From the NCBI GenBank assembly GCA_950097015.1, contig CATNEN010000039.1:9362001-9426000 (forward strand): 64,000 nucleotides of DNA. The letters are read 5' to 3'. Below the pieces are notes generated by a model. It was not told where the DNA came from. It did not search any database and saw only the letters and a program-made list of their open reading frames with translations. The DNA comes from Macrostomum hystrix (lineage: Eukaryota; Animalia; Platyhelminthes). The position numbers and the translations under genes are program-made. Positions 24,001 to 54,000 of this stretch are shown piece after piece; position 1 is the first letter of the stretch; every line of letters starts with the position of its first letter.

Positions 24001-27000
24001 GCTTCCTGCGCGGATTCCAGCGCTCTGGCGCAGTTGATCAGGCGCTGGCCGGCGCCGGCTAGGGCTTTCATCTCGGCCTGGCGTGCCAGCAGTTCCGCTT
24101 CGCAGGCTTTTAGACCGTCGATGATGTCGCTAATAGCGGCAGGCTCGGTTTCAGAGTCTGGATCAGCTGGGGGCCACACGGCGTCAGCCAATTCAGAGAG
24201 GCGTCGGTCGATTGCCTCCTGCCAGGATTGGGCGCTCTGCTGCCGGTCCGTCTGGGTTGGTTTGTGGTGTTGACAACGTTGCGTGGATCATCTCTTCTCT
24301 CCGCATTTTGTCTCACCCCATGCCTTATCTACCGACATCTTGCATCACCCCATGCCTTATCTACCGACATCTTGTCTCACCCCATGCCTTATCTACCGAC
24401 ATCTTGCATCACCCCATGCCTTATCTACCGACATCTTGTCTCACCCCATGCCTTATCTACCGACATCTTGCATCACCCCATGCCTTATCTACCGACATCT
24501 TGCATTACCCCATGCCTTATCTACCGACATCTTGCATTACCCCATGCCTTATCTACCGACATCTTGCATCACCCCATGCCTTATCTACCGACATCTTGTC
24601 TCACCCCATGCCTTATCTACCGACATCTTGCATCACCCCATGCCTTATCTACCGACATCTTGCATCACCCCATGCCTTATCTACCGACATCTTGCATCAC
24701 CCCATGCCTTATCTACAGACATCTCGTCTCTTCTGCACACATCTACCATCCCTCAAATACTACTGACCAACAGCTGCAGGGCGCACCTGATTCTCCAAAG
24801 CGTCCTGCAGAGCAGTGAGAAGTCGCAGTCGGGCGTCAGCTTCGCGTCGAAGCTGCTCCATCAGCGCCCGGCTCGTCGAAGCCGCGGTTATCAGCCTCTG
24901 CCGCTGCTCCTCGGGGACGGCATCGGAGTATTTGTGCAGAAGGCTCTCAGTCTGATAGCAGAGCGTCAACAGAGGCTGCTGGCGCGACAACAGATCGTTG
25001 TTGATGTCCTATTGAAAGAAAATCAAACCATTATTCAATTAAACAATCTTATTATCTTACCATGAGTAGGATTTCAGGACTGCGTCAAACAGATCTACCT
25101 GATGCTCATCCAACATCCGGGCCACTGATTTCTCGTTCAGTTCAGCCGATGGGAAAGCCAATAAGCGAGCTCGGAGAGTGCGCAACTTCGCGAGTTCTCG
25201 ATCCAAATCAGCCAGCAGATCCTCAGAATACTTCTTAGCGTCAACCTATATTTCAGTGGAATAGACGCAAGCGTAAATAAAACAGATCATTATGTACCTC
25301 TGTCCGACGCATTGCAGAAAGCGCGGCAGTTTAATTTTAAAGAAAGCTTTTAATTCTTTGCCTTGCTGAAGCGGAAGACACAGCAAACTACTATCAATGG
25401 GATAAACTACTCATTAGACAGACAAGGCTGACAACAATCATAGCGACCAAAAAGACAAATTTGCGTCCGGTTATGAAAAAACGATAATGGATTTGCAAGG
25501 CCACATGGATAATCTGTTTTCCAATGGGCAATGTATTTATGCTACAAAAACCGTTTTCAAAGTCACAATAAAATAACTATGAGCAATGCATCAGCGGCTC
25601 ATAGTGGGGATCGAACCATGGCAGGGCAGACTAGGACCACTTTCAGGTTTGCTTCACTAGTCTGTCAGTCGAAGTCGGCTCGAATTCAAGCCAGCTAATT
25701 GGAATGGCTATTAAGTACACACTGAGACAATTGTGAGGAAATGGCGCCGTGGTCAAATAGCTCTACAAGCAGTAGCTATCGCTTACACTACAAAAAAATC
25801 ACCACATAAAAGTAAAGATAAACAAAAGAGACTATCGAGCACAGTTACACACAACAAAAAGCAATATAATACTACAAGACTACAGAACTAACTAAAAGTG
25901 TATCCAAAAGAAGCCAATCAAAGACAGCCGTCAAAGCAAAGCAAATCAGAATGCGAAATTGAAAAAATGAAAATCAGTTTCCAGAAAAACCACAAAACGG
26001 TTTTACGATTTTTAGTCGTAAAAACGAGCTTAAATCTGAAATTAAAACTATTCAATCAAGGCTTACCGGACTGTCCAGTGTAACACACTGTAGCCAATCA
26101 GAGAACGATCGCTCAACAAATTGACCAAAACAGGGAAGAACAGCAGAACTCGAAGTGACGGGAGTGTTAGAGGAGGGAATTGAGTAAGAATTAGCTGAAA
26201 ACGATGACTGAGGACCCGATGAAAAGCTCACAAAAGTGTCACCATCTGTACCTCCTGAAGAGTTAAAGTTGTGGATCGCAACACCCTGCCTAGAATCAAC
26301 TAAGGCAACACTAAGCTCAGATGGACGAGCGATTGTCCGAAAACCATGATCTAAATACCAGTCTTCACTTGTCTGCAGCTGAACAGCCAACACGCGAGTC
26401 TCCGAGTCGACAACCACAGTCGACTCGTCAGCTTCTTTGGGCTGCTCGACCGGCGACTCAATCGTCTTTGCAGGGCTTTCAAGCTGCTCATCCTGCGTTG
26501 ACGGCTCCGACACTGACTCGACCTTTGACTCACGAGATTTCTCATCAACGCTCTCTGAGACTGCCGACTCTTGAATCTTGCTGACCTCATCATCAACACG
26601 ATGCTGTTCTTTCGTTGGCTTCTTGACTTCACGAGCTTCGTCTGACAGCAGCTCGATGTCTTTGCCTTCCGGCTTCAGCTGCTCAGTTCTCTGCTCAGAT
26701 GGTCGCGATTCCACAGCTCCCGTCTCGGATGCAGAAATCGCTTGCTCCTTTGCGACAGAGCTTGGTTCCTCATGGCTTGGAGTCTGCAGCTGATCAGCCA
26801 ACACTCGAGTCTCCGAGTCGACAACCACAGTCGACTCGTCAGCTTCTTTGGGCTGCTCGACCGGTGTCTCAGTCGTTCTTGCATGGCTTCCAAGCTGCTC
26901 ATCCTGCGTTGACGGCTCCGACACTGACTCGACCTTTGACGCACGAGATTTCTCATCAACGCTCTCTGAGACTGCCGACTCTTGAATCTTGCTGACCTCA

Positions 27001-30000
27001 TCATCAGCACGATGCTGTTCCTCCGTTGGCTTCTTGACTTCACGAGCTTCGTCTGACAGCAGCTCGATGTCTTTGCCTTCCGGCTTCAGCTGCTCAGTTC
27101 TCTGCTCAGATGGTCGCGATTCCACAGCTCGCGTCTCGGATGCAGAAATCGCTTGCTCCTTTGCGACAGAGCTTGGTTCCTCATGGCTTGGAGTCTGCAG
27201 CTGAACAGCCAACACGCGAGTCTCCGAGTCGACAACCACAGTCGACTCGTCAGATTCTTTGGCCTGCTCGACCGGTGCCTCAGTCGTTCTTGCAGGGCTT
27301 CCAAGCTGCTCATCCTGCGTTGACGGCTCCGACACTGACTCGACCTTTGACGCACGAGATTTCTCATCAACGCTCTCTGAGACTGCCGACTCTTGAATCA
27401 TGCTGACCTCGTCTTCAACACGATGCTGGTCCTCCGTTGGCTTCTTGACTTCACGAGCTTCGTCTGACAGCAGCTCGATGTCTTTGCCTTCCGGCTTCAG
27501 CTGCTCAGTTCTCTGCTCAGATGGTAGCGATTCCACAGCTCGCGTCTCGGATGCAGAAATCGCTTGCTCCTTTGCGACAGAGCTTGGTTCCTCATGGCTT
27601 GGAGTCTGCAGCTGAACAGCCAACACGCGAGTCTCCGAGTCGACAACCACAGTCGACTGCTTGTCGTCAGCTTCTTTGGCCTGCTCGACCGGTGCCTCAG
27701 TCGTTCTTGCAGGGCTTCCAAGCTGCTCATCCTGCGTTGACGGCTCCGACACTGACTCGACCTTTGACGCACGAGATTTCTCATCAACGCTCTCTGAGAC
27801 TGCCGACTCTTGAATCTTGCTGACCTCGTCTTCAACACGATGCTGTTCCTCCGTTGCCTTCTTGACTTCACGAGCTTCGTCTGACAGCAGCTCGATGTCT
27901 TTGCCTTCCGGCTTCAGCTGCTCAGTTCTCTGCTCAGATGGTCGCGATTCCACAGCTCCCGTCTCGGATGCAGAAATCGCTTGCTCCTTTGCGACAGAGC
28001 TTGGTTCCTCATGGCTTGGAGTCTGCAGCTGAACAGCCAACACGCGAGTCTCCGAGTCGACAACCACAGTCGACTCGTCAGCTTCTTTGGCCTGCTCGAC
28101 CGGTGCCTCAGTCGTTCTTGCAGGGCTTCCAAGCTGCTCATCCTGCGTTGACGGCTCCGACACTGACTCGACCTTTGACGCACGAGATTTCTCATCAACG
28201 CTCTCTGAGACTGCCGACTCTTGAATCTTGCTGACCTCGTCTTCAACACGATGCTGGTCCTCCGTTGGCTTCTTGACTTCACGAGCTTCGTCTGACAGCA
28301 GCTCGATGTCTTTGCCTTCCGGCTTCAGCTGCTCAGTTCTCTGCTCAGATGGTAGCGATTCCACAGCTCGCGTCTCGGATGCAGAAATCGCTTGCTCCTT
28401 TGCGACAGAGCTTGGTTCCTCATGGCTTGGAGTCTGCAGCTGAACAGCCAACACGCGAGTCTCCGAGTCGACAACCACAGTCGACTGCTTGTCGTCAGCT
28501 TCTTTGGCCTGCTCGACCGGTGCCTCAGTCGTTCTTGCAGGGCTTTCAAGCTGCTCATCCTGCGTTGACGGCTCCGACACTGACTCGACCTTTGACGCAC
28601 GAGATTTCTCATCAACGCTCTCTGAGACTGCCGACTCTTGAATCTTGCTGACCTCGTCTTCAGCACGATGCTGTTCCTCCGTTGGCTTCTTGACTTCACG
28701 AGCTTCGTCTGACAGCAGCTCGATGTCTTTGCCTTCCGGCTTCAGCTGCTCAGTTCTCTGCTCAGATGGTCGCGATTCCACAGCTCGCGTCTCGGATGCA
28801 GAAATCGCTTGCTCCTTTGCGACAGAGCTTGGTTCCTCATGGCTTGGAGTCTGCAGCTGAACAGCCAACACGCGAGTCTCCGAGTCGACAACCACAGTCG
28901 ACTCGTCAGATTCTTTGGCCTGCTCGACCGGTGCCTCAGTCGTTCTTGCAGGGCTTCCAAGCTGCTCATCCTGCGTTGACGGCTCCGACACTGACTCGAC
29001 CTTTGACGCACGAGATTTCTCATCAACGCTCTCTGAGACTGCCGACTCTTGAATCTTGCTGACCTCGTCTTCAACACGATGCTGTTCCTCCGTTGGCTTC
29101 TTGACTTCACGAGCTTCGTCTGACAGCAGCTCGATGTCTTTGCCTTCCGGCTTCAGCTGCTCAGTTCTCTGCTCAGATGGTAGCGATTCCACAGCTCGCG
29201 TCTCGGATGCAGAAATCGCTTGCTCCTTTGCGACAGAGCTTGGTTCCTCATGGCTTGGAGTCTGCAGCTGAACAGCCAACACGCGAGTCTCCGAGTCGAC
29301 AACCACAGTCGACTCGTCAGCTTCTTTGGGCCTGCTCGACCGGTGCCTCAGTCGTTCTTGCAGGGCTTCCAAGCTGCTCATCCTGCGCTGACGGCTCCGA
29401 CACTGACTCGACCTTTGACGCACGAGATTTCTCATCAACGCTCTCTGAGACTGCCGACTCTTGAATCTTGCTGACCTCGTCTTCAACACGATGCTGGTCC
29501 TCCGTTGGCTTCTTGACTTCACGAGCTTCGTCTGACAGCAGCTCGATGTCTTTGCCTTCCGGCTTCAGCTGCTCAGTTCTCTGCTCAGATGGTAGCGATT
29601 CCACAGCTCGCGTCTCGGATGCAGAAATCGCTTGCTCCTTTGCGACAGAGCTTGGTTCCTCATGGCTTGGAGTCTGCAGCTGAACAGCCAACACGCGAGT
29701 CTCCGAGTCGACAACCACAGTCGACTCGTCAGCTTCTTTGGCCTGCTCGACCGGTGCCTCAGTCGTTCTTGCAGGGCTTCCAAGCTGCTCATCCTGCGTT
29801 GACGGCTCCGACACTGACTCGACCTTTGACGCACGAGATTTCTCATCAACGCTCTCTGAGACTGCCGACTCTTGAATCTTGCTGACCTCGTCTTCAGCAC
29901 GATGCTGTTCCTCCGTTGGCTTCCTGACTTCACGAGCTTTGTCTGACAGCAGCTCAATGTCTTTGCCTTCCGGCTTCAGCTGCTCAGTTCTCTGCTCAGA

Positions 30001-33000
30001 TGGTCGCGATTCCACAGCTCGCGTCTCGGATGCAGAAATCGCTTGCTCCTTTGCGACAGAGCTTGGTTCCTCATGGCTTGGAGTCTGCAGCTGAACAGCC
30101 AACACGCGAGTCTCCGAGTCGACAACCACAGTCGACTCTTCAGCTTCCTTGGGCTGCTCGACCGGTGCCTCAGTCGTTCTTGCAGGGCTTTCAAGCAGCT
30201 CATCTTGCGTTGACGGCTCCGACAATGACTCGGCCTTTGACGCACGAGATTTCTCATCAACGCTCTCTGAGACTGCCGACTCTTGAATCTTGCTGACCTC
30301 GTCTTCAACACGATGCTGTTCCTCCGTTGGCTTCCTGACTTCACGAGCTTCGTCTGACAGTAGCTCGATGTCTTTGCCTTCTGGCTTCAGCTGCTCAGTT
30401 CTCTGCTCAGATGGTCGCGATTCCACAGCTCGCGTCTCGGATGCAGAAATCGCTTGCTCCTTTGCGACAGAGCTTGGTTCCTCATGGCTTGGAGTCTGCA
30501 GCTGAACAGCCAACACGCGAGTCTCCGAGTCGACAACCACAGTCGACTCGTCAGCTTCTTTGGCCTGCTCGACCGGTGCCTCAGTCGTTCTTGCAGGGCT
30601 TCCAAGCTGCTCATCCTGCGTTGACGGCTCCGACACTGACTCGACCTTTGACGCACGAGATTTCTCATCAACGCTCTCTGAGACTGCCGACTCTTGAATC
30701 TTGCTGACCTCGTCTTCAACACGATGCTGTTCCTCCGTTGGCTTCTTGACTTCACGAGCTTCGTCTGACAGCAGCTCGATGTCTTTGCCTTCCGGCTTCA
30801 GCTGCTCAGTTCTCTGCTCAGATGGTCGCGATTCCACAGCTCGCGTCTCGGATGCAGAAATCGCTTGCTCCTTTGCGACAGAGCTTGGTTCCTCATGGCT
30901 TGGAGTCTGCAGCTGAACAGCCAACACGCGAGTCTCCGAGTCGACAACCACAGTCGACTGCTTGTCGTCAGCTTCTTTGGCCTGCTCGACCGGTGCCTCA
31001 GTCGTTCTTGCAGGGCTTTCAAGCTGCTCATCCTGCGTTGACGGCTCCGACACTGACTCGACCTTTGACGCACGAGATTTCTCATCAACGCTCTCTGAGA
31101 CTGCCGACTCTTGAATCTTGCTGACCTCATCATCAACACGATGCTGGTCCTCCGTTGGCTTCTTGACTTCACGAGCTTCGTCTGACAGCAGCTCGATGTC
31201 TTTGCCTTCTGGCTTTAGCTGCTCAGTTCTCTGCTCAGATGGTCGCGATTCCACAGCTCCCTTCTCGGATGCAGAAATCGCTTGCTCCTTTGCGACAGAG
31301 CTTGGTTCCTCATGGCTTGGAGTCTGCAGCTGATCAGCCAACACTCGAGTCTCCGAGTCGACAACCACAGTCGACTCGTCAGCTTCTTTGGCCTGCTCGA
31401 CCGGTGCCTCAGTCGTTCTTGCAGGGCTTCCAAGCTGCTCATCCTGCGTTGACGGCTCCCACACTGACTCGACCTTTGACGCACGAGATTTCTCATCAAC
31501 GCTCTCTGAGACTGCCGACTCTTGAATCTTGCTGACCTCGTCTTCAACACGATGCTGGTCCTCCGTTGGCTTCTTGACTTCACGAGCTTCGTCTGACAGC
31601 AGCTCGATGTCTTTGCCTTCCGGCTTCAGCTGCTCAGTTCTCTGCTCAGATGGTCGCGATTCCACAGCTCGCGTCTCGGATGCAGAAATCGCTTGCTCCT
31701 TTGCGACAGAGCTTGGTTCCTCATGGCTTGGAGTCTGCAGCTGAACAGCCAACACGCGAGTCTCCGAGTCGACAACCACAGTCGACTCGTCAGCTTCTTT
31801 GGCCTGCTCGACCGGTGCCTCAGTCGTTCTTGCAGGGCTTCCAAGCTGCTCATCCTGCGTTGACGGCTCCGACACTGACTCGACCTTTGACGCACGAGAT
31901 TTCTCATCAACGCTCTCTGAGACTGCCGACTCTTGATTCTTGCTGACCTCGTCTTCAACACGATGCTGTTCCTCCGTTGGCTTCCTGACTTCACGAGCTT
32001 TGTCTGACAGCAGCTCGATGTCTTTGCCTTCCGGCTTCAGCTGCTCAGTTCTCTGCTCAGATGGTCGCGATTCCACAGCTCGCGTCTCGGATGCAGAAAT
32101 CGCTTGCTCCTTTGCGACAGAGCTTGGTTCCTCATGGCTTGGAGTCTGCAGCTGAACAGCCAACACGCGAGTCTCCGAGTCGACAACCACAGTCGACTCT
32201 TCAGCTTCCTTGGGCTGCTCGACCGGTGCCTCAGTCGTTCTTGCAGGGCTTTCAAGCAGCTCATCTTGCGTTGACGGCTCCGACACTGACTCGACCTTTG
32301 ACGCACGAGATTTCTCATCAACGCTCTCTGAGACTGCCGACTCTTGAATCTTGCTGACCTCATCATCAACACGATGCTGGTCCTCCGTTGGCTTCTTGAC
32401 TTCACGAGCTTCGTCTGACAGCAGCTCGATGTCTTTGCCTTCTGGCTTTAGCTGCTCAGTTCTCTGCTCAGATGGTCGCGATTCCACAGCTCCCTTCTCG
32501 GATGCAGAAATCGCTTGCTCCTTTGCGACAGAGCTTGGTTCCTCATGGCTTGGAGTCTGAAGCTGATCAGCCAACACTCGAGTCTCCGAGTCGACAACCA
32601 CAGTCGACTCGTCAGCTTCTTTGGGCTGCTCGACCGGTGCCTCAGTCGTTCTTGCAGGGCTTCCAAGCTGCTCATCCTGCGTTGACGGCTCCCACACTGA
32701 CTCGACCTTTGACGCACGAGATTTCTCATCAACGCTCTCTGAGACTGCCGACTCTTGAATCTTGCTGACCTCGTCTTCAACACGATGCTGGTCCTCCGTT
32801 GGCTTCTTGACTTCACGAGCTTCGTCTGACAGCAGCTCGATGTCTTTGCCTTCCGGCTTCAGCTGCTCAGTTCTCTGCTCAGATGGTCGCGATTCCACAG
32901 CTCGCGTCTCGGATGCAGAAATCGCTTGCTCCTTTGCGACAGAGCTTGGTTCCTCATGGTTTGGAGTCTGCAGCTGAACAGCCAACACGCGAGTCTCCGA

Positions 33001-36000
33001 GTCGACAACCACAGTCGACTCGTCAGCTTCTTTGGCCTGCTCGACCGGTGCCTCAGTCGTTCTTGCAGGGCTTCCAAGCTGCTCATCCTGCGTTGACGGC
33101 TCCGACACTGACTCGACCTTTGACGCACGAGATTTCTCATCAACGCTCTCTGAGACTGCCGACTCTTGAATCTTGCTGACCTCGTCTTCAACACGATGCT
33201 GTTCCTCCGTTGCCTTCTTGACTTCACGAGCTTCGTCTGACAGCAGCTCGATGTCTTTGCCTTCCGGCTTCAGCTGCTCAGTTCTCTGCTCAGATGGTCG
33301 CGATTCCACAGCTCGCGTCTCGGATGCAGAAATCGCTTGCTCCTTTGCGACAGAGCTTGGTTCCTCATGGCTTGGAGTCTGCAGCTGAACAGCCAACACG
33401 CGAGTCTCCGAGTCGACAACCACAGTCGACTCGTCAGCTTCTTTGGGCTGCTCGACCGGTGCTTCAGTCGTTCTTGCAGGGCTTTCAAGCAGCTCATCTT
33501 GCGTTGACGGCTCCGACAATGACTCGGCCTTTGACGCACGAGATTTCTCATCAACGCTCTCTGAGACTGCCGACTCTTGAATCTTGCTGACCTCGTCTTC
33601 AACACGATGCTGTTCCTCCGTTGGCTTCTTGACTTCACGAGCTTCGTCTGACAGCAGCTCGATGTCTTTGCCTTCTGGCTTCAGCTGCTCAGTTCTCTGC
33701 TCAGATGGTCGCGATTCCACAGCTCGCGTCTCGGATGCAGATATCGCTTGCTCCTTTGCGACAGAGCTTGGTTCCTCATGGCTTGGAGTCTGCAGCTGAA
33801 CAGCCAACACGCGAGTCTCCGAGTCGACAACCACAGTCGACTCTTCAGCTTCCTTGGGCTGCTCGACCGGTGCCTCAGTCGTTCTTGCAGGGCTTTCAAG
33901 CAGCTCATCTTGCGTTGACGGCTCCGACAATGACTCGGCCTTTGACGCACGAGATTTCTCATCAACGCTCTCTGAGACTGCCGACTCTTGAATCTTGCTG
34001 ACCTCGTCTTCAACACGATGCTGTTCCTCCGTTGGCTTCCTGACTTCACGAGCTTTGTCTGACAGCAGCTCGATGTCTTTGCCTTCCGGCTTTAGCTGCT
34101 CAGTTCTCTGCTCAGATGGTCGCGATTCCACAGCTCGCGTCTCGGATGCAGAAATCGCTTGCTCCTTTGCGACAGAGCTTGGTTCCTCATGGCTTGGAGT
34201 CTGCAGCTGAACAGCCAACACGCGAGTCTCCGAGTCGACAACCACAGTCGACTGCTTGTCGTCAGCTTCTTTGGCCTGCTCGACCGGTGCCTCAGTCGTT
34301 CTTGCAGGGCTTTCAAGCTGCTCATCCTGCGTTGACGGCTGCGACACTGACTCGACCTTTGACGCACGAGATTTCTCATCAACGCTCTCTGAGACTGCCG
34401 ACTCTTGAATCTTGCTGACCTCATCATCAGCACGATGCTGTTCCTCCGTTGGCTTCTTGACTTCACGAGCTTCGTCTGACAGCAGCTCGATGTCTTTGCC
34501 TTCCGGCTTTAGCTGCTCAGTTCTCTGCTCAGATGGTCGCGATTCCACAGCTCCCTTCTCGGATGCAGAAATCGCTTGCTCCTTTGCGACAGAGCTTGGT
34601 TCCTCATGGTTTGGAGTCTGAAGCTGATCAGCCAACACTCGAGTCTCCGAGTCGACAACCACAGTCGACTCGTCAGCTTCTTTGGGCTGCTCGACCGGTG
34701 CCTCAGTCGTTCTTCCAGGGCTTTCAAGCTGCTCATCCTGCGTTGACGGCTCCGACACTGACTCGACCTTTGACGCACGAGATTTCTCATCAACGCTCTC
34801 TGAGACTGCCGACTCTTGAATCTTGCTGACCTCATCATCAACACGATGCTGGTCCTCCGTTGGCTTCTTGACTTCACGAGCTTCGTCTGACAGCAGCTCG
34901 ATGTCTTTGCCTTCTGGCTTTAGCTGCTCAGTTCTCTGCTCAGATGGTCGCGATTCCACAGCTCGCGTCTCGGATGCAGAAATCGCTTGCTCCTTTGCGA
35001 CAGAGCTTGGTTCCTCATGGCTTGGAGTCTGCAGCTGAACAGCCAACACGCGAGTCTCCGAGTCGACAACCACAGTCGACTCGTCAGCTTCTTTGGGCTG
35101 CTCGACCGGTGCCTCAGTCGTTCTTGCAGGGCTTCCAAGCTGCTCATCCTGCGTTGACGGCTCCGACACTGACTCGACCTTTGACGCACGAGATTTCTCA
35201 TCAACGCTCTCTGAGACTGCCGACTCTTGAATCTTGCTGACCTCGTCTTCAACACGATGCTGGTCCTCCGTTGGCTTCTTGACTTCACGAGCTTCGTCTG
35301 ACAGCAGCTCGATGTCTTTGCCTTCCGGCTTCAGCTGCTCAGTTCTCTGCTCAGATGGTAGCGATTCCACAGCTCGCGTCTCGGATGCAGAAATCGCTTG
35401 CTCCTTTGCGACAGAGCTTGGTTCCTCATGGCTTGGAGTCTGCAGCTGAACAGCCAACACGCGAGTCTCCGAGTCGACAACCACAGTCGACTCGTCAGCT
35501 TCTTTGGGCTGCTCGACCGGTGCCTCAGTCGTTCTTGCAGGTCTTCCAAGCTGCTCATCCTGCGTTGACGGCTCCGACACTGACTCGACCTTTGACGCAC
35601 GAGATTTCTCATCAACGCTCTCTGAGACTGCCGACTCTTGAATCTTGCTGACCTCGTCTTCAACACGATGCTGTTCCTCCGTTGGCTTCCTGACTTCACG
35701 AGCTTTGTCTGACAGCAGCTCGATGTCTTTGCCTTCCGGCTTCAGCTGCTCAGTTCTCTGCTCAGATGGTCGCGATTCCACAGCTCGCGTCTCGGATGCA
35801 GAAATCGCTTGCTCCTTTGCGACAGAGCTTGGTTCCTCATGGCTTGGAGTCTGCAGCTGAACAGCCAACACGCGAGTCTCCGAGTCGACAACCACAGTCG
35901 ACTCGTCAGCTTCTTTGGCCTGCTCGACCGGTGCCTCAGTCGTTCTTGCAGGTCTTCCAAGCTGCTCATCCTGCGTTGACGGCTCCGACACTGACTCGAC

Positions 36001-42000: not shown

Positions 42001-45000
42001 GCAGCCCTAGAGTTTGAAGCTTCTGGCAAAGTGCTTAAAGAACTAATCATATCAGGACTGTCTGGTTCTGAAAAACGTTCGTTCGAGACTGCTTGTACAA
42101 TTGGTATCGATGTTCCGCTCTGCGAAGACACAGTAACATTTTCTGCAGAAACGAGTTCTGATGTCGTCTCCTTATTTTCTGCAGCCCTAGAGTTTGAAGC
42201 TTCTGGCAAAGTGCTTAAATAACTAATCCTATCAGGACTGTCTGGTTCTGAAAAATATTCGCTTGAGACTTCCGCAGTATTTGGGTTCGATGCTTCAGTC
42301 TTGGTAGATTTAGGAACTTTCTGTTCTGGAAAAGCGGGCTGGGCCATGGCTTCGGTCTTTCTTGTAGCCTCAGAGTTTGGAGCTTCTGGTACAGTGCTTG
42401 AAGAATCTATTTCAACTGGACGGTTTGGTTCTAATAAACTTTCGTTCGTAATTGTTTTAGCTATTGGTTTAGATGTCTCATCCCCAAAATACTTATTAAA
42501 TTCTTTTGGATAAACTAGCTGAGATGTTCTTTTACTTTCTTCTGTTGCTCCATAGTTAGAAGCGTTCGGCAAAGTGCTTGATGAATTATCCATAAAAAGA
42601 CTGTTTGCCTCTGAAAAAAGTTCAATTGAGACTGCTTTGGCTATTGGTGTCGACGCTTCATTCTGGGAAGACATAGAATTTTTTTCTGGAGAAACAATAC
42701 TAGAAGCTGTTTCTGTCTGATCCGTAGCTGAAAATGTCGCCGGTTCTGGCAAAGTGCTTGACAAATCCACTCTAACTAAACTATCTCGTTCCTGAAATTT
42801 TTTATTTGACCCTACTTCCTTCACTGAACTTAACGCTTTAGTCTCGGTAGACTTAAAAAATTCGTCTGGAGGACCGAGTTCTGCAGGATCGAGTTGAGTA
42901 GAGAAGTTTGAAAGGTTTACATCATCATTGGAGCCGGCTGCATCAAGGTTTGGTGCAACACGAGTCCTGCTCTGAATATCAGAACATGTTATTTCATTAT
43001 TGAGGTTGTCAATTGGTTCACGTCTATCTGGAGCATCTCTACACTGTGGATTCTCACTTTCATTTGTAGTATTTGAACTCAAAATGGCGACTGGTATTTG
43101 ATGCCTTTCGTCATAATCAGATGGATTTTGTGGTCCAGTGTCTTCTTTCTCATTAGAAATCACACTCTTTGTTGTATCTTCATCAGAAAAAACATTTTCT
43201 TTCTTTTTATCCGTTGGCATACTTGTTCTCGCCAAGTTGTTTCTTAAGTGGACCTCCGCATGTTGCGCCGCGTCTTGTGTAGACAAATCCTCTAGAGTTG
43301 ATCCCTCTAGACCTACGGCACCAGTAGCAACATAAGGGCTACTGACATCAATATTGACGCCTGAAATTTCATTATCACATTGCTCTGTATCACCCAGGGC
43401 GCGACTGTCGGCTTCACCTTCCAGTGGTGATACCTGAGAAATATCGGTGCATATATTAAGTTCCTTGCCAGAGGATTTTGAACTTGCAATATCGCAGAGA
43501 TTAGCAACAATCTGCTTTGAAATTTCGCCATTATCAGTTAGCACTTGAATCTGAGACTTTATCAAGCCTGCATCAAGATATTGCTCCTGAGAAGGCGTTG
43601 ACCCTTGAATTACTAATTTGTCTGCATCATTGGAACACGGTAAAATTGAATGACTCTCCGACTGAGCATCAACAGAGTTGCCACTAACGTCACGCTGAGC
43701 ATTTGAGTCTGACAAGCAAGCCGCGATGTCTGAGTCAGTGAACTGCACATAGGGCTAAATTGAAAATGAATATATATTTCATTTATAAAAACGGCAAATT
43801 AACTCTCTATTTACAATTTATTAGGTAAAAATGTGAATAATTTTAATTTCAATACAGTCTAGCTCGTAGTTATTATTAAAATATTAGATATAGTATAGGT
43901 CAGAATACTCATCGTGCCAATTTAAACCTAACTATTATAGTTACATCGAACAGAATTATAACGACTTCAAACTGCATCCAGTGCACTTTTTAACAACAGA
44001 ACCAAGTGTCATGTTTAAATAATTACAATGGTTTAGCCCGAAACAAGTACCCGTCAAGGCACTGGATATTACTTTCTAGAGCACATTTCATTTCGACTTA
44101 TCAGATTTTTTCATTTATACATTTCTAGTACTAGATTTGTTACAGCTAGTGCTAATATAATGGCTCTAAATAATTATGAAGTCAGTAAAGCACTCACCAT
44201 GTCAAGCTGACTAGCAGGCCCGCCGACAGTATATTCGTCAGAAGCTCTGATCACGTGGGGACCTGCCTCAGACTCAAATTCTAAAATTACAAGCAAATCA
44301 CTGATGCATAGACATCAAATGCTCGTAGCTGAGAAAAAAAGCAAAAAACAAGCAAAAATGTAACAGGTTACCATTCCTCGGCTGTGAAGAAAATGTATTT
44401 CCAGAGATTGGATCCACAACCGAAGAAGTTTCCTCCGTTCTCGGATCCGGAATCGACGCATCCTTCACTGTGCCACTCTTTGTGTCCAGAGAGTTGCTCA
44501 TGTCGTCAAACGGCGGTTTGGATGCCTCCTTCAGTTTCTGAGCTTCGTCCTCTGATAAGAGACCGCGTCGTGCTGCTTCGTCGATGGACATCTGTTCTCC
44601 GGTTCTGGGATCAGTGACAAGACCGCTCTTCTTGTCCAGCGACTTGTTCAGGTCCTCGAACGACGGCTGAACTTTTCTTCGAAGTCGATCAGCCTCGTCT
44701 TCTGACAACAGTCCGCGACGAACGGCTTCGTCGAGGGAGATCTGCTCTCCAGTTCTGGGATCGGTCACTGTGCCACTCTTTGTGTCCAGAGAGTTGCTCA
44801 TGTCGTCAAACGGCGGTTTGGATGCCTCCTTCAGTTTCTGAGCTTCGTCCTCTGATAAGAGACCGCGTCGTGCTGCTTCGTCGATAGACATCTGTTCTCC
44901 GGTTCTGGGATCAGTGACAAGACCGCTCTTCTTGTCCAGCGACTTGTTCAGGTCCTCGAACGACGGCTGAACTTTTCTTCGAAGTCGATCAGCCTCGTCT

Positions 45001-48000
45001 TCTGACAACAGTCCGCGACGAACGGCTTCGTCGAGGGAGATCTGCTCTCCAGTTCTGGGATCGGTCACTGTGCCACTCTTTGTGTCCAGAGAGTTGCTCA
45101 TGTCGTCAAACGGCGGTTTGGATGCCTCCTTCAGTTTCTGAGCTTCGTCCTCTGATAAGAGACCGCGTCGTGCTGCTTCGTCGATAGACATCTGTTCTCC
45201 GGTTCTGGGATCAGTGACAAGACCGCTCCTCTTGTCCAGCGACTTGTTCAGGTCCTCGAACGACGGCTGAACTTTTCTTCGAAGTCGATCAGCCTCGTCT
45301 TCTGACAACAGTCCGCGACGAACGGCTTCGTCGAGGGAGATCTGCTCTCCAGTTCTGGGATCGGTCACTGTGCCACTCTTTGTGTCCAGAGAGTTGCTCA
45401 TGTCGTCAAACGGCGGTTTGGATGCCTCCTTCAGTTTCTGAGCTTCGTCCTCTGATAAGAGACCGCGTCGTGCTGCTTCGTCGATAGACATCTGTTCTCC
45501 GGTTCTGGGATCAGTGACAAGACCGCTCCTCTTGTCCAGCGACTTGTTCAGGTCCTCGAACGACGGCTGAACTTTTCTTCGAAGTCGATCAGCCTCGTCT
45601 TCTGACAACAGTCCGCGACGAACGGCTTCGTCGAGGGAGATCTGCTCTCCAGTTCTGGGATCGGTCACTGTGCCACTCTTTGTGTCCAGAGAGTTGCTCA
45701 TGTCGTCAAACGGCGGTTTGGATGCCTCCTTCAGTTTCTGAGCTTCGTCCTCTGATAAGAGACCGCGTCGTGCTGCTTCGTCGATAGACATCTGTTCTCC
45801 GGTTCTGGGATCAGTGACAAGACCGCTCTTCTTGTCCAGCGACTTGTTCAGGTCCTCGAACGACGGCTGAACTTTTCTTCGAAGTCGATCAGCCTCGTCT
45901 TCTGACAACAGTCCGCGACGAACGGCTTCGTCGAGGGAGATCTGCTCTCCAGTTCTGGGATCGGTCACTGTGCCACTCTTTGTGTCCAGAGAGTTGCTCA
46001 TGTCGTCAAACGGCGGTTTGGATGCCTCCTTCAGTTTCTGAGCTTCGTCCTCTGATAAGAGACCGCGTCGTGCTGCTTCGTCGATAGACATCTGTTCTCC
46101 GGTTCTGGGATCAGTGACAAGACCGCTCTTCTTGTCCAGCGACTTGTTCAGGTCCTCGAACGACGGCTGAACTTTTCTTCGAAGTCGATCAGCCTCGTCT
46201 TCTGACAACAGTCCGCGACGAACGGCTTCGTCGAGGGAGATCTGCTCTCCAGTTCTGGGATCGGTCACTGTGCCACTCTTTGTGTCCAGAGAGTTGCTCA
46301 TGTCGTCAAACGGCGGTTTGGATGCCTCCTTCAGTTTCTGAGCTTCGTCCTCTGATAAGAGACCGCGTCGTGCTGCTTCGTCGATAGACATCTGTTCTCC
46401 GGTTCTGGGATCAGTGACAAGACCGCTCTTCTTGTCCAGCGACTTGTTCAGGTCCTCGAACGACGGCTGAACTTTTCTTCGAAGTCGATCAGCCTCGTCT
46501 TCTGACAACAGTCCGCGACGAACGGCTTCGTCGAGGGAGATCTGCTCTCCAGTTCTGGGATCGGTCACTGTGCCACTCTTTGTGTCCAGAGAGTTGCTCA
46601 TGTCGTCAAACGGCGGTTTGGATGCCTCCTTCAGTTTCTGAGCTTCGTCCTCTGATAAGAGACCGCGTCGTGCTGCTTCGTCGATAGACATCTGTTCTCC
46701 GGTTCTGGGATCAGTGACAAGACCGCTCTTCTTGTCCAGCGACTTGTTCAGGTCCTCGAACGACGGCTGAACTTTTCTTCGAAGTCGATCAGCCTCGTCT
46801 TCTGACAACAGTCCGCGACGAACGGCTTCGTCGAGGGAGATCTGCTCTCCAGTTCTGGGATCGGTCACTGTGCCACTCTTTGTGTCCAGAGAGTTGCTCA
46901 TGTCGTCAAACGGCGGTTTGGATGCCTCCTTCAGTTTCTGAGCTTCGTCCTCTGATAAGAGACCGCGTCGTGCTGCTTCGTCGATAGACATCTGTTCTCC
47001 GGTTCTGGGATCAGTGACAAGACCGCTCTTCTTGTCCAGCGACTTGTTCAGGTCCTCGAACGACGGCTGAACTTTTCTTCGAAGTCGATCAGCCTCGTCT
47101 TCTGACAACAGTCCGCGACGAACGGCTTCGTCGAGGGAGATCTGCTCTCCAGTTCTGGTATCGGTCACTGTGCCACTCTTTGTGTCCAGAGAGTTGCTCA
47201 TGTCGTCAAACGGCGGTTTGGATGCCTCCTTCAGTTTCTGAGCTTCGTCCTCTGATAAGAGACCGCGTCGTGCTGCTTCGTCGATAGACATCTGTTCTCC
47301 GGTTCTGGGATCAGTGACAAGACCGCTCTTCTTGTCCAGCGACTTGTTCAGGTCCTCGAACGACGGCTGAACTTTTCTTCGAAGTCGATCAGCCTCGTCT
47401 TCTGACAACAGTCCGCGACGAACGGCTTCGTCGAGGGAGATCTGCTCTCCAGTTCTGGTATCGGTCACTGTGCCACTCTTTGTGTCCAGAGAGTTGCTCA
47501 TGTCGTCAAACGGCGGTTTGGATGCCTCCTTCAGTTTCTGAGCTTCGTCCTCTGATAAGAGACCGCGTCGTGCTGCTTCGTCGATAGACATCTGTTCTCC
47601 GGTTCTGGGATCAGTGACAAGACCGCTCTTCTTGTCCAGCGACTTGTTCATGTCCTCGAACGACGGCTGAACTTTTCTTCGAAGTCGATCAGCCTCGTCT
47701 TCTGACAACAGTCCGCGACGAACGGCTTCGTCGAGGGAGATCTGCTCTCCAGTTCTGGGATCGGTCACTGTGCCACTCTTTGTGTCCAGAGAGTTGCTCA
47801 TGTCGTCAAACGGCGGTTTGGATGCCTCCTTCAGTTTCTGAGCTTCGTCCTCTGATAAGAGACCGCGTCGTGCTGCTTCGTCGATAGACATCTGTTCTCC
47901 GGTTCTGGGATCAGTGACAAGACCGCTCTTCTTGTCCAGCGACTTGTTCAGGTCCTCGAACGACGGCTGAACTTTTCTTCGAAGTCGATCAGCCTCGTCT

Positions 48001-51000
48001 TCTGACAACAGTCCGCGACGAACGGCTTCGTCGAGGGAGATCTGCTCTCCAGTTCTGGGATCGGTCACTGTGCCACTCTTTGTGTCCAGAGAGTTGCTCA
48101 TGTCGTCAAACGGCGGTTTGGATGCCTCCTTCAGTTTCTGAGCTTCGTCCTCTGATAAGAGACCGCGTCGTGCTGCTTCGTCGATAGGACATCTGTTCTC
48201 CGGTTCTGGGATCAGTGACAAGACCGCTCTTCTTGTCCAGCGACTTGTTCAGGTCCTCGAACGACGGCTGAACTTTTCTTCGAAGTCGATCAGCCTCGTC
48301 TTCTGACAACAGTCCGCGACGAACGGCTTCGTCGAGGGAGATCTGCTCTCCAGTTCTGGGATCGGTCACTGTGCCACTCTTTGTGTCCAGAGAGTTGCTC
48401 ATGTCGTCAAACGGCGGTTTGGATGCCTCCTTCAGTTTCTGAGCTTCGTCCTCTGATAAGAGACCGCGTCGTGCTGCTTCGTCGATGGACATCTGTTCTC
48501 CGGTTCTGGGATCAGTGACAAGACCGCTCTTCTTGTCCAGCGACTTGTTCAGGTCCTCGAACGACGGCTGAACTTTTCTTCGAAGTCGATCAGCCTCGTC
48601 TTCTGACAACAGTCCGCGACGAACGGCTTCGTCGAGGGAGATCTGCTCTCCAGTTCTGGGATCGGTCACTGTGCCACTCTTTGTGTCCAGAGAGTTGCTC
48701 ATGTCGTCAAACGGCGGTTTGGATGCCTCCTTCAGTTTCTGAGCTTCGTCCTCTGATAAGAGACCGCGTCGTGCTGCTTCGTCGATGGACATCTGTTCTC
48801 CGGTTCTGGGATCAGTGACAAGACCGCTCTTCTTGTCCAGCGACTTGTTCAGGTCCTCGAACGACGGCTGAACTTTTCTTCGAAGTCGATCAGCCTCGTC
48901 TTCTGACAACAGTCCGCGACGAACGGCTTCGTCGAGGGAGATCTGCTCTCCAGTTCTGGGATCGGTCACTGTGCCACTCTTTGTGTCCAGAGAGTTGCTC
49001 ATGTCGTCAAACGGCGGTTTGGATGCCTCCTTCAGTTTCTGAGCTTCGTCCTCTGATAAGAGACCGCGTCGTGCTGCTTCGTCGATAGACATCTGTTCTC
49101 CGGTTCTGGGATCAGTGACAAGACCGCTCTTCTTGTCCAGCGACTTGTTCAGGTCCTCGAACGACGGCTGAACTTTTCTTCGAAGTCGATCAGCCTCGTC
49201 TTCTGACAACAGTCCGCGACGAACGGCTTCGTCGAGGGAGATCTGCTCTCCAGTTCTGGTATCGGTCACTGTGCCACTCTTTGTGTCCAGAGAGTTGCTC
49301 ATGTCGTCAAACGGCGGTTTGGATGCCTCCTTCAGTTTCTGAGCTTCGTCCTCTGATAAGAGACCGCGTCGTGCTGCTTCGTCGATAGACATCTGTTCTC
49401 CGGTTCTGGGATCAGTGACAAGACCGCTCTTCTTGTCCAGCGACTTGTTCAGGTCCTCGAACGACGGCTGAACTTTTCTTCGAAGTCGATCAGCCTCGTC
49501 TTCTGACAACAGTCCGCGACGAACGGCTTCGTCGAGGGAGATCTGCTCTCCAGTTCTGGTATCGGTCACTGTGCCACTCTTTGTGTCCAGAGAGTTGCTC
49601 ATGTCGTCAAACGGCGGTTTGGATGCCTCCTTCAGTTTCTGAGCTTCGTCCTCTGATAAGAGACCGCGTCGTGCTGCTTCGTCGATAGACATCTGTTCTC
49701 CGGTTCTGGGATCAGTGACAAGACCGCTCTTCTTGTCCAGTGAGGAAATGAGCTTTATTTCAGTCTTGTTTCTTTTTTCTTGGGTGGTTTCTACAGTTTG
49801 TTCTGACTTCTTGATTTTTGAACCCTTGGATTCCTGGAAGACCGTCTTGGTTGACTTGGTTGCGTTGTCAGAAACATCTACTGGGCCAGAGGTATTGTCT
49901 ACGTTTGTTTGTGTATCAGCGTCTACTAGTGAGTTTTTATCAGTGGAAACCGCAGAAACTACTTGGGTTTTCGATTCTTTAGCTTTATGACGGCTGCTTT
50001 CGTCCTCGAAATGTAGCTCTGATATTGTTTTTCTTTCAGTTGCGATTCGATCGTTAATCTCTAAGGTTTCTTGATGCTTATCATCAGAGTGAAGATCCAA
50101 GGCATCAATACTCTCATTTGATGGCTGTGATTTTGGACTTTGCACAACTGTGACATCTTTGAAATATACACTAGCCTCGGTTAGATATGTTGTATGAGCA
50201 CTCGCAAACGAAACAGCTGTTGTTTTCTCTTGCACGCTATGATCTTGCCTTGTGCTGAAAGTTTCCGCTGTTGGCGCTTTTGACATTATGATTTCCTCTG
50301 TAGTACTCCGCTTCGCCTTTAAAATATCAGAAACGTGGACAGTTTTTTGGCGGCTCTCGCCATCTTCTATATGGAGATCTTCCACTGGAGCATTTGCTTT
50401 ATCGTTTGCCTTTTGGGTGCCTGTAAGGTCTTTCAAAACACGACTAACAGTATGTGCTTCTTCTCGAGACAAGATGCCCCTTTTAATAGCTACATCGATA
50501 GACAGTGTTTGACCAGTTCTCGGGTCTGTGACAGTCCCGGTATTTGGATTTAGAGAGCTTGAAACTTCATCGAAACTGGGCTTAGTCCTGTCTCTAAGCT
50601 TCTTTGCTTCAACAGAGGACAGGATCTTTTTCGCTAAAGCTTCGTCAATAGTCAACTCCTCTCCAGTTCTTGGATCGGTAATAGTGCCGGCAAGTGGATC
50701 TAATGAACTGGCGATGTCATCGAACTTTGGTTTCACCTTGTTGCGCAGCTTTTTAGCTTCGGTTGGTGTTAAAATTTTATTGGTGACAGCGTCGTCAATC
50801 GACATCTCTTCGCCAGTTCTGGGATCAGTCACAGTACCGCTGATCGGATTAAGCGTGTCTGCAACATCATCAAACTTGGGCTTCATTGTGTCTTTAAGCT
50901 TTTTGGCCTCGGAAGGTGTCAATAGTTTATTCGCAAGCGCTTCTTCTATGGTCATTTCTTGACCATTTCTAGGATCAGTTACAATGCCGCTATCTGGATC

Positions 51001-54000
51001 AAAAGAGTGTGCCACATCTTTAAATTTGGGCTTCACCTTTTCGCGCAGTCGTTTTGCTTCGGCTGGCAAAAGAACATTCTTGTCTAGCGCTTCATCGATT
51101 GTCATATCCTCACCGGTCCTGGGGTCTGTGACGGTACCCTTAATCGGATCGAGTGAATTAGCAACATCTTCAAATTTCGGTTTGACCCTACTTCGCAGCT
51201 TCTTAGCTTCGGCGGGAGTAAGCAATTTGCTTTTAACTGCATCGTCAATAGATAGTTCTTCTCCAGTTCTGGGATCAGTGACTGTACCATCTGTGGGATC
51301 GAGCGATTTCGAAACATCTTCAAATTTAGGCTTTACCTTTTCACGAAGCTTCTTTGCTTCTGAAGGACTCAAAAGCTTCTTAGCTAGAGCATCATCCACA
51401 GTCATTTCCTCCCCAGTTCTGGGGTCAGCAATAGTGCCAGTTCTGGGATCCAAGGAACTAGCTAAATCAGCAAACTTTGGTTTCACTTTTCTTTGGAGCC
51501 TCTTAGCCTCATCAGGAGACAACAGCTTCTTCGACAAAGCCTCTTCGATTGGTATCACTTTTCCAGTTTCCGGATCTAAAAGGCTGCCTTTGTTAGGATC
51601 AAACGACTTGACAATATCATTAAAAGTAGGCTTGGCCTTCTCTGCTGGAGAAGGACTGGAAGATGCTGTAACTTCTGGAGCTACTTGCGGTGGAGTAACT
51701 GCTGATTGAACAACCGGCATTTCTTCAAGCTTCGACAAAGGAGGAGTCTGCAAAGCAATTTAAGTGTGTCATTTAGCCCTTAAACACTCCTATACAATCC
51801 CAGAACTGCAATCCCAGTCCTACAATCTCAGAACTACAAGTACAGCACTCACCGCTCGCTGGACCTCAGCCCTGGCCGCAAGCTGCTGGCGTTCCTTCTG
51901 CGCCACATCCGGCGGTAGCGGATTGGGGCTGCACAAGCCGATCTCCTCTTCGATGGTGCGAGCGTGATAGCTGTCGAAATAATCACCCAGCGGCGGTGGC
52001 GGTCTGCGATTGAACGGCGTGACGCGGACTAGGCCTTCGGCAATGGCGTCAGCCAGTGTGGACGTATCGCCAGTGGCAGAGTCCATGTAGGTCGCCCGAT
52101 TGGCGTCAATTAAGCCGGCGTTGAGCGCTTCATCTGGCGGCAACATGAGGCGCGATTTGGCATCGTAGACTGCGCGTACCTGTTTGATAGGGTAGTTTTT
52201 TAAGTCGGTTAGTTACGAGTACTGTCCTATCAATTAGTATGAGAGCCCTCAGAACAGGGATACGTACTGAAGCACGCACTCACTCAAGGGGGCCAGTGGC
52301 AGAGCGTTTAACGCGTTTGCCTGTCACACCATGGTCGCAAAGCTCGAATCCTTGTCCTGGAATTCGCAGCCTATTAAAGCCAACCCCCAGAGCACAGATA
52401 GAGTGCACACCGACTCCAGTGTGTTCAATGCGTAGAATTGCTTTATTTGCCTAAATTTCGCCAAGTGACGTCCCAGTAGTGTACACTTTCACTGTCCATT
52501 TGGGGATTGGTTCTTAAGGGTGTAAATTGCACAACAAGCCCTCAAACCTTCACTCCGCGGCTGCGACCCCAACTACGAGAAAATGTGAAACTAAACTACA
52601 GGAAGCAAACAAGACGGAATTAGGTACAACGAAGCAATGAATAAGTTTCTAACAAGCACCTCCAATGGCGGCTCGCGACGATGCCTGAACCGCTCTACTA
52701 GTAGCAGTCCGTCTCGACCGAACGTGACAATTGTGGCAAACAGGCTGCGTCTTCGAATGGCTTCAGAAATGCCAATCCGACTCTGAGTTGAAGGATCTTT
52801 CATTGTGCCAGCGTTCAGATCAATTTCACCATTAATCAGCATCTGGGAGGTGATGTGCAGCTCCAGGCCGGTGCCGCGATGCTCGTGCCAGATGCAGTCA
52901 ATTATGCAGTTCCGCTCGCCCCGAATTGGCTCGCCGAATTCTTCATGGTCATCTAGCGCCGGCTGGTGACTTTTTGGCGGAGGCAATGACGCCACCGACG
53001 CCGGTGATGTCAACGCTGTTGTAGCCGGTGGCGGCGGCGGCGGTCGTCTTCGTCGGCCAGTCGTCACTGTAGACGACGGCGGAAGGCGACGCTGAGCCGA
53101 CTCGCTCAGAATTTGAGACGCCGTGGTTGCAATCGAGTCTTCAACTGCGTCGGCGTCCTCTGCTTCGAGCCGCTCTTGCTCAGCTTCTAGATTTGCTTCA
53201 GAAGCGCTGGTTTCAACTGTTGAGGCTGTAGGCGTAGAGTGCAGCTGGTTAGTAAGCGACTCTTCGCTCTCATCTAGTCGCCTGTTTTCTGCACAACTCG
53301 GGTCAGTCCTAACAGGGCTGGCATTTTGTGTGCGCAAAGACAGGCCAGAGTCAGCCGAGGTGACGCCGCCCCCAAACTCATACTCGGCCGCAACGGAGCT
53401 CTCAGTTGAGGCCGGCCCACTCCGATGCACAATAGCCTCATTCTCCGCAGCCGCGCCCACACCGGGGCTAGCCGGGCCAGCCAATAGACTCTTTGCTAAT
53501 AAAGCCTCCTCTTCCACAATGGATCTGAGCTCCACATCGCCAGGTCGCAACAGAGTGGACAGAACAGCGTCGGGACCGACCAGACCATCGTCGGCGGCTT
53601 GGCGCAGGCTGATCCGTCTGCCAGTGCAGTGATTCACGTAGACGCCCTGATCCGGATCTACGATGCCCAGCTTGACAGCCTCTTCAAATGTGACCGACTC
53701 CAGCGTTACTGGATTGAGCACAGCTGCCGGGCCCACTAGCTTGGCTCTGGTGACACGAGCTCGCTCAACAGGGCGCATCGCCACCCTGGATGTAAGCAGC
53801 ACAGGGCAGGACAGTTGCATCAGAAGCAGGGCCTTGTCAGAGGTCAGCAAGGAGCCGCTGGCGGCCTCTTGAATAGTGTAGACTGCGCCGGACTTTGAGT
53901 CCACAACGCGACCCTGAGCGGCGTCGAATAAACCGGCTTGGGCGGCTTCCATCACCGACAGTTCAACGCCATCGGCTGATGTTTGCTGCTGGCGAAGGCC

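Follow-up and report, generated by a model that had tools for sequence, protein, structure and literature searches.

Spectraplakins are the main cross-linkers of actin filaments, microtubules and intermediate filaments in animal cells, and one of the two spectraplakin genes of the flatworm Macrostomum hystrix appears to carry, between its plectin repeats and its spectrin rod, a giant internal insert built in two layers. The gene lies on the minus strand of a 64,000-nucleotide (nt) stretch of contig C39 (CATNEN010000039.1 of GenBank assembly GCA_950097015.1, positions 9,362,001 to 9,426,000), called the window below; positions are counted from its first letter unless a contig is named, and splice junctions are written as donor>acceptor. 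The first layer would be a region of ~43 plectin repeats (2,486 amino acids (aa), exons A1 and A2) and the second a three-way choice, in which the donor of A2 would be joined to a cassette mega-exon B (1,322 aa), to a cassette mega-exon C (4,505 aa) or directly to the first exon of the rod, so that B and C serve as alternative and effectively mutually exclusive cassettes. We give this reading a probability of about two in three. While a plakin-repeat mega-exon is itself known from flies and mammals, what is new here is the extension of the internal spectraplakin insert by two alternative, lineage-specific mega-exons.

The gene is arranged on the minus strand in the order CH domain, plectin repeats, insert and spectrin repeats, with a probable C-terminal GAS2 domain. 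More specifically, Pfam places the CH domain (PF00307) at 59182-59613 (C39:9421182-9421613; expectation value (E) 2.6e-13), plectin repeats (PF00681) at 52.6-55.6 kb and throughout 44.3-51.7 kb, and spectrin repeats (PF00435) at 2862-3452 (E 1.5e-7), with further spectrin repeats at C39:9358954-9362107, reaching just below the window, and the GAS2 domain (PF02187) at C39:9354635-9354838 (E 7e-29), ~7 kb below the window and on the same strand. Judged by its CH, plectin and spectrin content, the gene is a genuine member of the MACF1/dystonin/Shot/VAB-10 family; the genome searched comprised 220,453,370 bases in 42 contigs. Scans of the window for tRNA genes and Rfam families gave no hits.

A first-pass annotation of this DNA had described the insert as three modules separated by introns, and the modules were indeed recovered where it had placed them on the minus strand, both in a stop-to-stop map (large open stretches at 51759-48109, 48248-44301, 43754-39759, 39591-29320 and 29564-26055) and with Tandem Repeats Finder, the repeat peptides that it quoted being present in the translations. 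All five of its introns (105, 91, 443, 206 and 821 nt) are AT-rich and have GT..AG ends, and the exon ends carry the phases that it gave, the frames across the junctions being derived by coordinate arithmetic. The open frame of the upstream exon, or of its 3' part (51853..52212), ends in phase 0 at the donor 51853 (GTGAGT), with a predicted junction to 51747, where A1 (44372..51747, 7,376 nt) begins. An intron of 91 nt (44281..44371) separates A1 from the mini-exon A2 (44198..44280, 83 nt), which is followed by an intron of 443 nt (43755..44197) and by exon B (39789..43754, 3,966 nt). The interval of 206 nt between B and C (39583..39788) has GT..AG ends of its own and forms part of the larger introns that lead from A2 to C and from B to the rod. 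Exon C occupies 26067..39582 (13,516 nt); the 821 nt that follow it (25246..26066) form a proposed intron with a predicted donor at 26067 (GTAAGC), and the rod exon (25061..25245), the first after the insert, begins in phase 0 and is followed by a GTAAGA donor at 25060.

The splicing of these exons can be followed in assembled sequencing reads. A search of sequencing runs with window 39210-44500 returned DNA runs (X1 and others) together with four runs of unrecorded kind (X4-X7, all from one study) that hold ~72% of the searched words, and contigs of X1, X4, X5 and X9 were compared with this 5,291-nt stretch. The X1 contigs continue through the introns, including the 443-nt one, and X1 is therefore DNA. 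The contigs of X4 and X5 lack all three introns of the stretch, and their exon-exon joints correspond to GT..AG introns on the minus strand. Joint 44372>44280 is found in both runs (flanked by 83 and 123 nt), as is joint 44198>39582, which runs from A2 to C and skips B; joint 44198>43754, from A2 to B, is found in X4/X5 contigs as well. Loose ends extend beyond the compared stretch, namely 26 nt at the donor of B (39786) in X4 and X5 and 27 nt at the donor of A2 (44196) in X5, and their sequence occurs only once in the window, at 25217-25242, directly against the acceptor 25245. Therefore, junctions 39789>25245 (X4 and X5) and 44198>25245 (X5) exist, and the mini-exon's donor 44198 is a branch point to B, to C or to the rod. 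In other words, two junctions (44372>44280 and 44198>43754), two acceptors (39582 and 25245) and a donor (39789) of the first-pass annotation are in use in these contigs.

The same contigs show how the cassettes are connected. In the assembled graph, B is followed only by the rod exon, and B and C are each preceded only by A2: the contig at the 3' end of B extends k-1 letters (~29 nt) into the rod exon without branching, and the contig at the 5' end of C reaches back k-1 letters (30 nt) into A2. Within window 39210-44500, A2, B and C are preceded in X4 and X5 solely by A-derived sequence, and no spliced leader or other foreign loose end was found in these contigs at the acceptor of B or of C. 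Since both acceptors are joined to A2 and no foreign ends occur, B and C are parts of the spectraplakin transcript rather than separate transcription units; separate transcription was what the first-pass annotation had named as evidence that would refute its model. Between B and C, at 39583-39788, RNA depth is limited to a few bases directly adjoining exon B. In X4 the contig depth is 29.7 for A2, 13.6-15.8 for B and 14.6 for C, contig depth being a poor measure. As for the first layer, words of the A array are ~20 times as deep as the unique tail of A in RNA (592/29.7) and ~19 times as deep in DNA (1384/73.1), and the similarity of these ratios suggests that the whole array is present in mature RNA and that its assembled copy number is about right.

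Since the donor of B leads to the rod, the acceptor of C is reached only from A2 and the two are not joined to each other in the X4 and X5 contigs, B and C look mutually exclusive. In the proposed arrangement, A1 and A2 would form the first layer and donor 44198 would be spliced to B, to C or directly to 25245; B would continue to 25245 and not to C, and the donor of C at 26067 would likewise join 25245. The upstream donor is thus common to both cassettes, while the use of acceptor 25245 is seen for B and predicted for C. With phase-0 boundaries throughout, once two extra bases treated below are discounted, every choice would remain in frame. The insert would then measure 2,486 aa (A) or 3,808 aa (A+B), both RNA-supported apart from the predicted entry 51853>51747, or 6,991 aa (A+C), for which the entry into C is RNA-supported and the exit from C would follow the predicted donor. 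B and C would act as flexible spacers that link the plakin-repeat region to the spectrin rod and differ in length and in motif content, and the arrays would have grown by recent unequal crossing-over.

Module A is the part of the insert with recognizable domains. In translation, A1 consists of ~8 diverged plectin-like repeats of 50 aa (~51635-50450), followed after a unique linker by a young array of 100-aa dimers (49740-44465), for which Tandem Repeats Finder reports a 300-nt unit in 17.6 copies at 99% identity, with a 150-nt sub-period at 71%. PF00681 matches the two open halves of A with E 5.7e-131 (17 stretches) and E 8.6e-201 (24 stretches), and the module would hold ~43 plectin repeats in 2,486 codons if the extra base at 48186 is discounted. 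Four A repeats modelled from the single sequence with AlphaFold2 reach a predicted local distance difference test (pLDDT) score of 84, with a beta-hairpin followed by helices in each 50 aa. The best Foldseek matches of this model are the plakin repeat domains of desmoplakin (1lm5), envoplakin (4qmd), plectin (2n03) and periplakin (4q28), with E-values down to 1.7e-6 and a global template-modelling score (TM-score) of only ~0.2; as modelled, the repeat motif matches plakin repeats and the overall arrangement is extended and non-globular. A protein homology search with the old diverged array of A, limited by length windows and word indexing, was blank. By its position and its plectin repeats, module A is assigned to the internal plakin-repeat region of the Shot-PH, MACF1b and dystonin-b type. 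The first-pass annotation had correctly pointed to the site at which BPAG1b/dystonin-b, MACF1b and Shot carry a large exon, and module A matches that exon. Its picture of a spacer that is built from three unrelated arrays and follows the plectin repeats has to be revised, since A is a plectin-repeat array by Pfam and Foldseek and is itself the known internal region. A plus-strand open reading frame (ORF) of 241 aa (50984-51709) runs antisense to the old A array and is most likely a by-product of repetition rather than a gene.

Exon B is a single open frame of 1,322 aa, the unique parts of which are covered by RNA contigs. It is serine-rich and acidic (serine 18.7%, aspartate plus glutamate 15.5%, isoelectric point 4.3), and its core is a 180-nt (60-aa) unit repeated 9.2 times at 96% identity (42270-40616, Tandem Repeats Finder), flanked by older, diverged copies of the same 60-aa unit; its ~770 unique codons are free of stops. 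No Pfam family has an individually matched stretch in B, a homology search with its unique N-terminal part and a protein-atlas search with B (both limited by length windows and word indexing) were blank, and the sequence has no second occurrence in the genome. An ORF of 483 aa on the plus strand (40771-42222), antisense to the B array, is again most likely a product of repetition and not a gene. Two further runs match this part of the gene: X9, which bears another organism code and is guessed to be RNA, holds two B contigs of ~240 nt (39981-40214 and 42919-43171) with 2-3 differences, and X2, labelled as another organism in the study of the assembly, holds 85% of the searched words. These matches could be due to (i) a close strain or sibling species, (ii) a labelling problem or (iii) cross-contamination.

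Exon C comprises 4,505 codons and one extra base. A unique head of 124 aa is followed by 31 acidic units, each 137 or 139 aa long (39209-26371), and these by ~100 aa of tail; Tandem Repeats Finder reports a 411-nt unit in 31.1 copies at 97% identity. By length, 23 of the 31 units have 411 nt, seven have 417 nt and one has 412 nt. The module is rich in glutamate, serine, valine, alanine, glutamine and lysine; its units contain 23% aspartate plus glutamate, 14% lysine plus arginine and no aromatic residues, with 6% proline over the whole exon. The AlphaFold2 model of two units is mostly of low confidence (pLDDT 53), which is consistent with disorder, and has one confident helix of ~30 residues per unit. 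The ~360 unique codons of C are stop-free. No credible Pfam family was found in C, and its sequence, like that of B, occurs only once in the genome. Weak matches in A, B or C to OCRE, CART, FHIPEP, CIS_tube, WWE_1 and Rib were rejected, as none has an individually significant stretch and their scores are weak ones summed over identical repeats.

Relatives of C were found in a single species. A HMMER search with the head and three units against 1.84 billion representative proteins returned as sole relative the partial hypothetical protein PAA88133.1 of Macrostomum lignano, with its cluster mate PAA88136.1 (38-39% identity), and a profile built from the C units and the M. lignano proteins recovered again only M. 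lignano. The two species share two invariant motifs, VVV[D/E]SETRVLAVQLQ.P and ESRPSE.R.EQLKPE.K..EL, and on these shared motifs C-type repeats are judged older than the split between M. hystrix and M. lignano. Within M. hystrix the units are homogenised to ~98% identity, and a higher-order repeat was sought among them, unit-to-unit identity proving independent of the distance between units. In PAA88133.1 and PAA88136.1, the ESRPSE..EQLKPE motif recurs 3-4 times per ~250 aa and the SETRVLAVQLQ motif occurs once; therefore, the architecture of C-type units differs between the two species.

The lengths given above for A and C depend on two single-base frame breaks. As assembled, A has 7,459 nt and C 13,516 nt, both of the form 3n+1, and neither is open throughout. 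A register scan combined with unit-to-unit alignment traced the frame changes, which fall between 48248 and 48109 in A1 and between 29564 and 29320 in C, to (i) an extra T at 48186, inside one A unit (ATGTCC[T]ATCGACG), after which the original frame stops at ~48109, and (ii) an extra C (CC to CCC) at ~29330, in the sole 412-nt unit of C (GCAGGCC[C]AAAG), after which the original frame stops at ~29320, both on the minus strand. Once these bases are discounted, A comes to 2,486 codons and C to 4,505, each bounded by phase 0 on either side; B is intact as it stands. The earlier claim that every module begins and ends in phase 0 thus holds outright for B, and for A and C with the two bases set aside.

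Both breaks are probably consensus errors of the assembly. The genome was assembled with canu from PacBio long reads (CLR), polished with Arrow and Pilon, and has a Merqury quality value (QV) of 42.8 (PMC10468722). An error of consensus is favoured because ~1.3 errors are expected in 25.7 kb at this QV, because both breaks lie inside arrays of units that are 98-99% identical, in which short reads are not uniquely placeable for polishing, because discounting each extra base restores a phase-0 end at the donors (44372 and 44198, which are RNA-verified, and 26067, which is predicted) and because the unique parts are free of stops. The assembly contains no second haplotype copy of the locus with which the breaks could be compared.

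Several points weigh against the two-layer arrangement or against parts of it. Firstly, the insertion at 48186 lies outside a homopolymer, where consensus errors of long reads are less often expected, and if either insertion were real, mRNAs that contain A or C would have premature stops. Secondly, the kind of runs X4 and X5 is not on record, and they are taken to be RNA from their intron-less joints; the RNA evidence consists of contigs from two runs of one study, and contigs drop rare variants, so that a minor isoform with B joined to C may exist. Thirdly, the disorder of exon B is predicted from composition alone, and variants among the repeat copies are too few, with a synonymous excess that is weak for both C (11 synonymous and 15 non-synonymous variants, p = 0.03) and B (p = 0.13).

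The first of these points leads to a different account, in which both insertions are real in the inbred line. Transcripts containing A, and with them those containing B or C, would then be non-productive or truncated, the protein would break off within the plakin-repeat array, and decay of the mega-exons downstream would have just begun. The assembly as given does have stops at ~48109 and ~29320, and it was polished with long as well as short reads, to which the position of the T at 48186 may be added. Against this stand not only the residual errors to be expected at such a QV and the unreliability of short-read polishing in arrays of this kind, but also the transcripts themselves: those running through the tail of A, A2, B and the head of C were readily assembled and show no sign of depletion. 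Moreover, the lengths of all other units are multiples of three, and the long unique parts are still open. We consider it unlikely that this account holds, and it is likewise unlikely, at around the same odds, that at least one of the two breaks is real.

The second point bears on the model of the first-pass annotation, in which A, B and C could all be included, each being skipped independently, to give an insert of ~8,300 aa in a protein of >13,000 aa. The 206-nt interval between B and C does have good GT..AG sites and compatible phases, and contigs cannot prove that a rare junction is absent. Still, joint 39789>39582 was found in neither of the two RNA-type runs, the 3' end of B and the 5' end of C are unbranched in the contig graph, and the depth of A2 in X4 is about the sum of those of B and C. 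The idea of independently skippable modules survives insofar as B and C are each skipped in frame in the RNA contigs; the independence is not supported, no joint between the two being found in these contigs. The figure of ~8,300 aa is correct as arithmetic (2,486 + 1,322 + 4,505, that is 8,313 aa) when both extra bases are discounted, and the combination A+B+C is not seen in the X4/X5 contigs. The largest insert with an entry seen in RNA is A+C, at ~6,991 aa, so that a giant of >13,000 aa is not borne out. Altogether, inclusion of all three modules seems improbable.

An account that we regard as equally improbable treats C as an alternative terminal exon. Isoforms with C would end four codons after 26067, and would lack the spectrin rod and the GAS2 domain, as in the plakin-only isoforms VAB-10A and BPAG1e. 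The exit of C through donor 26067 is only predicted, the frame stops just past it at 26055, and the intron that follows (821 nt) exceeds the other four in length and contains two ATTAAA sites; these sites, however, lie ~700 nt downstream, and AATAAA does not occur in 25246-26066, which is not decisive. The GTAAGC donor, moreover, stands exactly at a phase-0 codon boundary and matches acceptor 25245, which is used by two other donors.

If B and C are alternative cassettes, as the two-layer arrangement has it, they might go further and form a regulated pair of mutually exclusive, unrelated mega-exons that switch the length and motif content of the linker, with the 31 two-motif units of C as a possible multivalent docking array; this is put forward tentatively, with the odds rather against it. 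To our knowledge, such a pair would be unusually large for mutually exclusive exons and would not have arisen by exon duplication. B and C have neither sequence, unit length nor composition in common, and are not homologous duplicates, unlike classical mutually exclusive exons. Docking/selector pairing among the three introns was sought and yielded only AT-rich complements of 9-11 nt at chance level, and an RNA-pairing mechanism for the exclusivity was rejected on this ground.

The second spectraplakin gene, on contig C2 (C2:432700-477400), also has a CH domain, a few plectin repeats, spectrin repeats and a GAS2 domain, and shares with the C39 gene the order of these parts and the site of a giant insert. 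The exons that flank the insert, and with them the flanks of A, are collinear in both genes: 52212-51853 corresponds to C2:440254-440583 at 45% identity, and the ORF 24287-23577 aligns with C2:461242-461805. In the paralog, these anchors enclose open exons of 2,855 and 2,576 aa, the content of which is unrelated to B or C and comprises repeats of 10-11 aa rich in threonine, glutamine, serine and glycine (30-nt and 33-nt units) as well as a non-repetitive exon rich in serine, glutamate and aspartate. Both paralogs thus carry giant inserts, unrelated to each other, and in this lineage the presence of such fast-evolving inserts at this site characterises the family.

Among known systems, the closest counterpart of module A is the mega-exon of Drosophila shot described by Röper and Brown: with 10,497 nt, it codes for 33 plakin repeats that are dispersed rather than grouped into 4.5-repeat domains, lies between the actin-binding/plakin part and the spectrin rod, and gives isoforms of up to 8,846 residues (PMC2173965). 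Shot-PH and module A share this position between plakin domain and rod (the exon being optional in Shot), a content of dispersed plectin repeats (33-40 in Shot; PMC2173965; 10.1101/122010) and, as far as the A model can be trusted, an extended, non-globular arrangement. In contrast to Shot, the repeats of A follow a strict 50-aa period and most of them lie in a young, 99%-identical array, and A is followed by the two further alternative mega-exons without plectin repeats, for which neither PMC2173965 nor 10.1101/122010 describes a counterpart in shot. In MACF1b and dystonin-b (BPAG1b), an internal plakin-repeat region is likewise spliced in between the plakin domain and the rod, but there the plectin repeats (~20 or 9-11) are organised as plakin repeat domains, and disordered tandem-repeat cassettes of 1,300-4,500 aa do not occur. 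The role of the optional internal plakin-repeat region in spectraplakins is still poorly understood (10.1101/122010). Finally, the PEVK region of titin resembles C, the model of which is mostly of low confidence, in having long arrays of low-complexity acidic units in differentially spliced exons, but it is spread over many small exons whereas C is a single exon of 13.5 kb, and there is no sequence homology between them. A titin-like function of B or C as an elastic spring would be pure analogy, and we offer it as speculation.

The gene illustrates the birth and homogenisation of giant coding tandem arrays, with wholly different content at the same site in its paralog. Macrostomum is a genus of regenerating model animals, in which isoforms thousands of residues apart in length could be assigned to particular cell types. 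On the practical side, single-base consensus errors inside such arrays can break gene models in polished long-read assemblies.

Two minor observations concern other parts of the gene and of the genome. CH-domain matches at C10:57517-58785 and C41:604328-605506 have identical scores and opposite orientations, suggesting either a duplicated haplotig left over after purging of the assembly or a recent duplication. In the window, the introns of the rod part (110-24724) are filled with minisatellites (period 16-36 nt, up to 80 copies; e.g. 4599-6825, 11069-11776, 14974-15673, 19339-20223 and 24313-24724), which give rise to long spurious ORFs on both strands and to strong local base skews.

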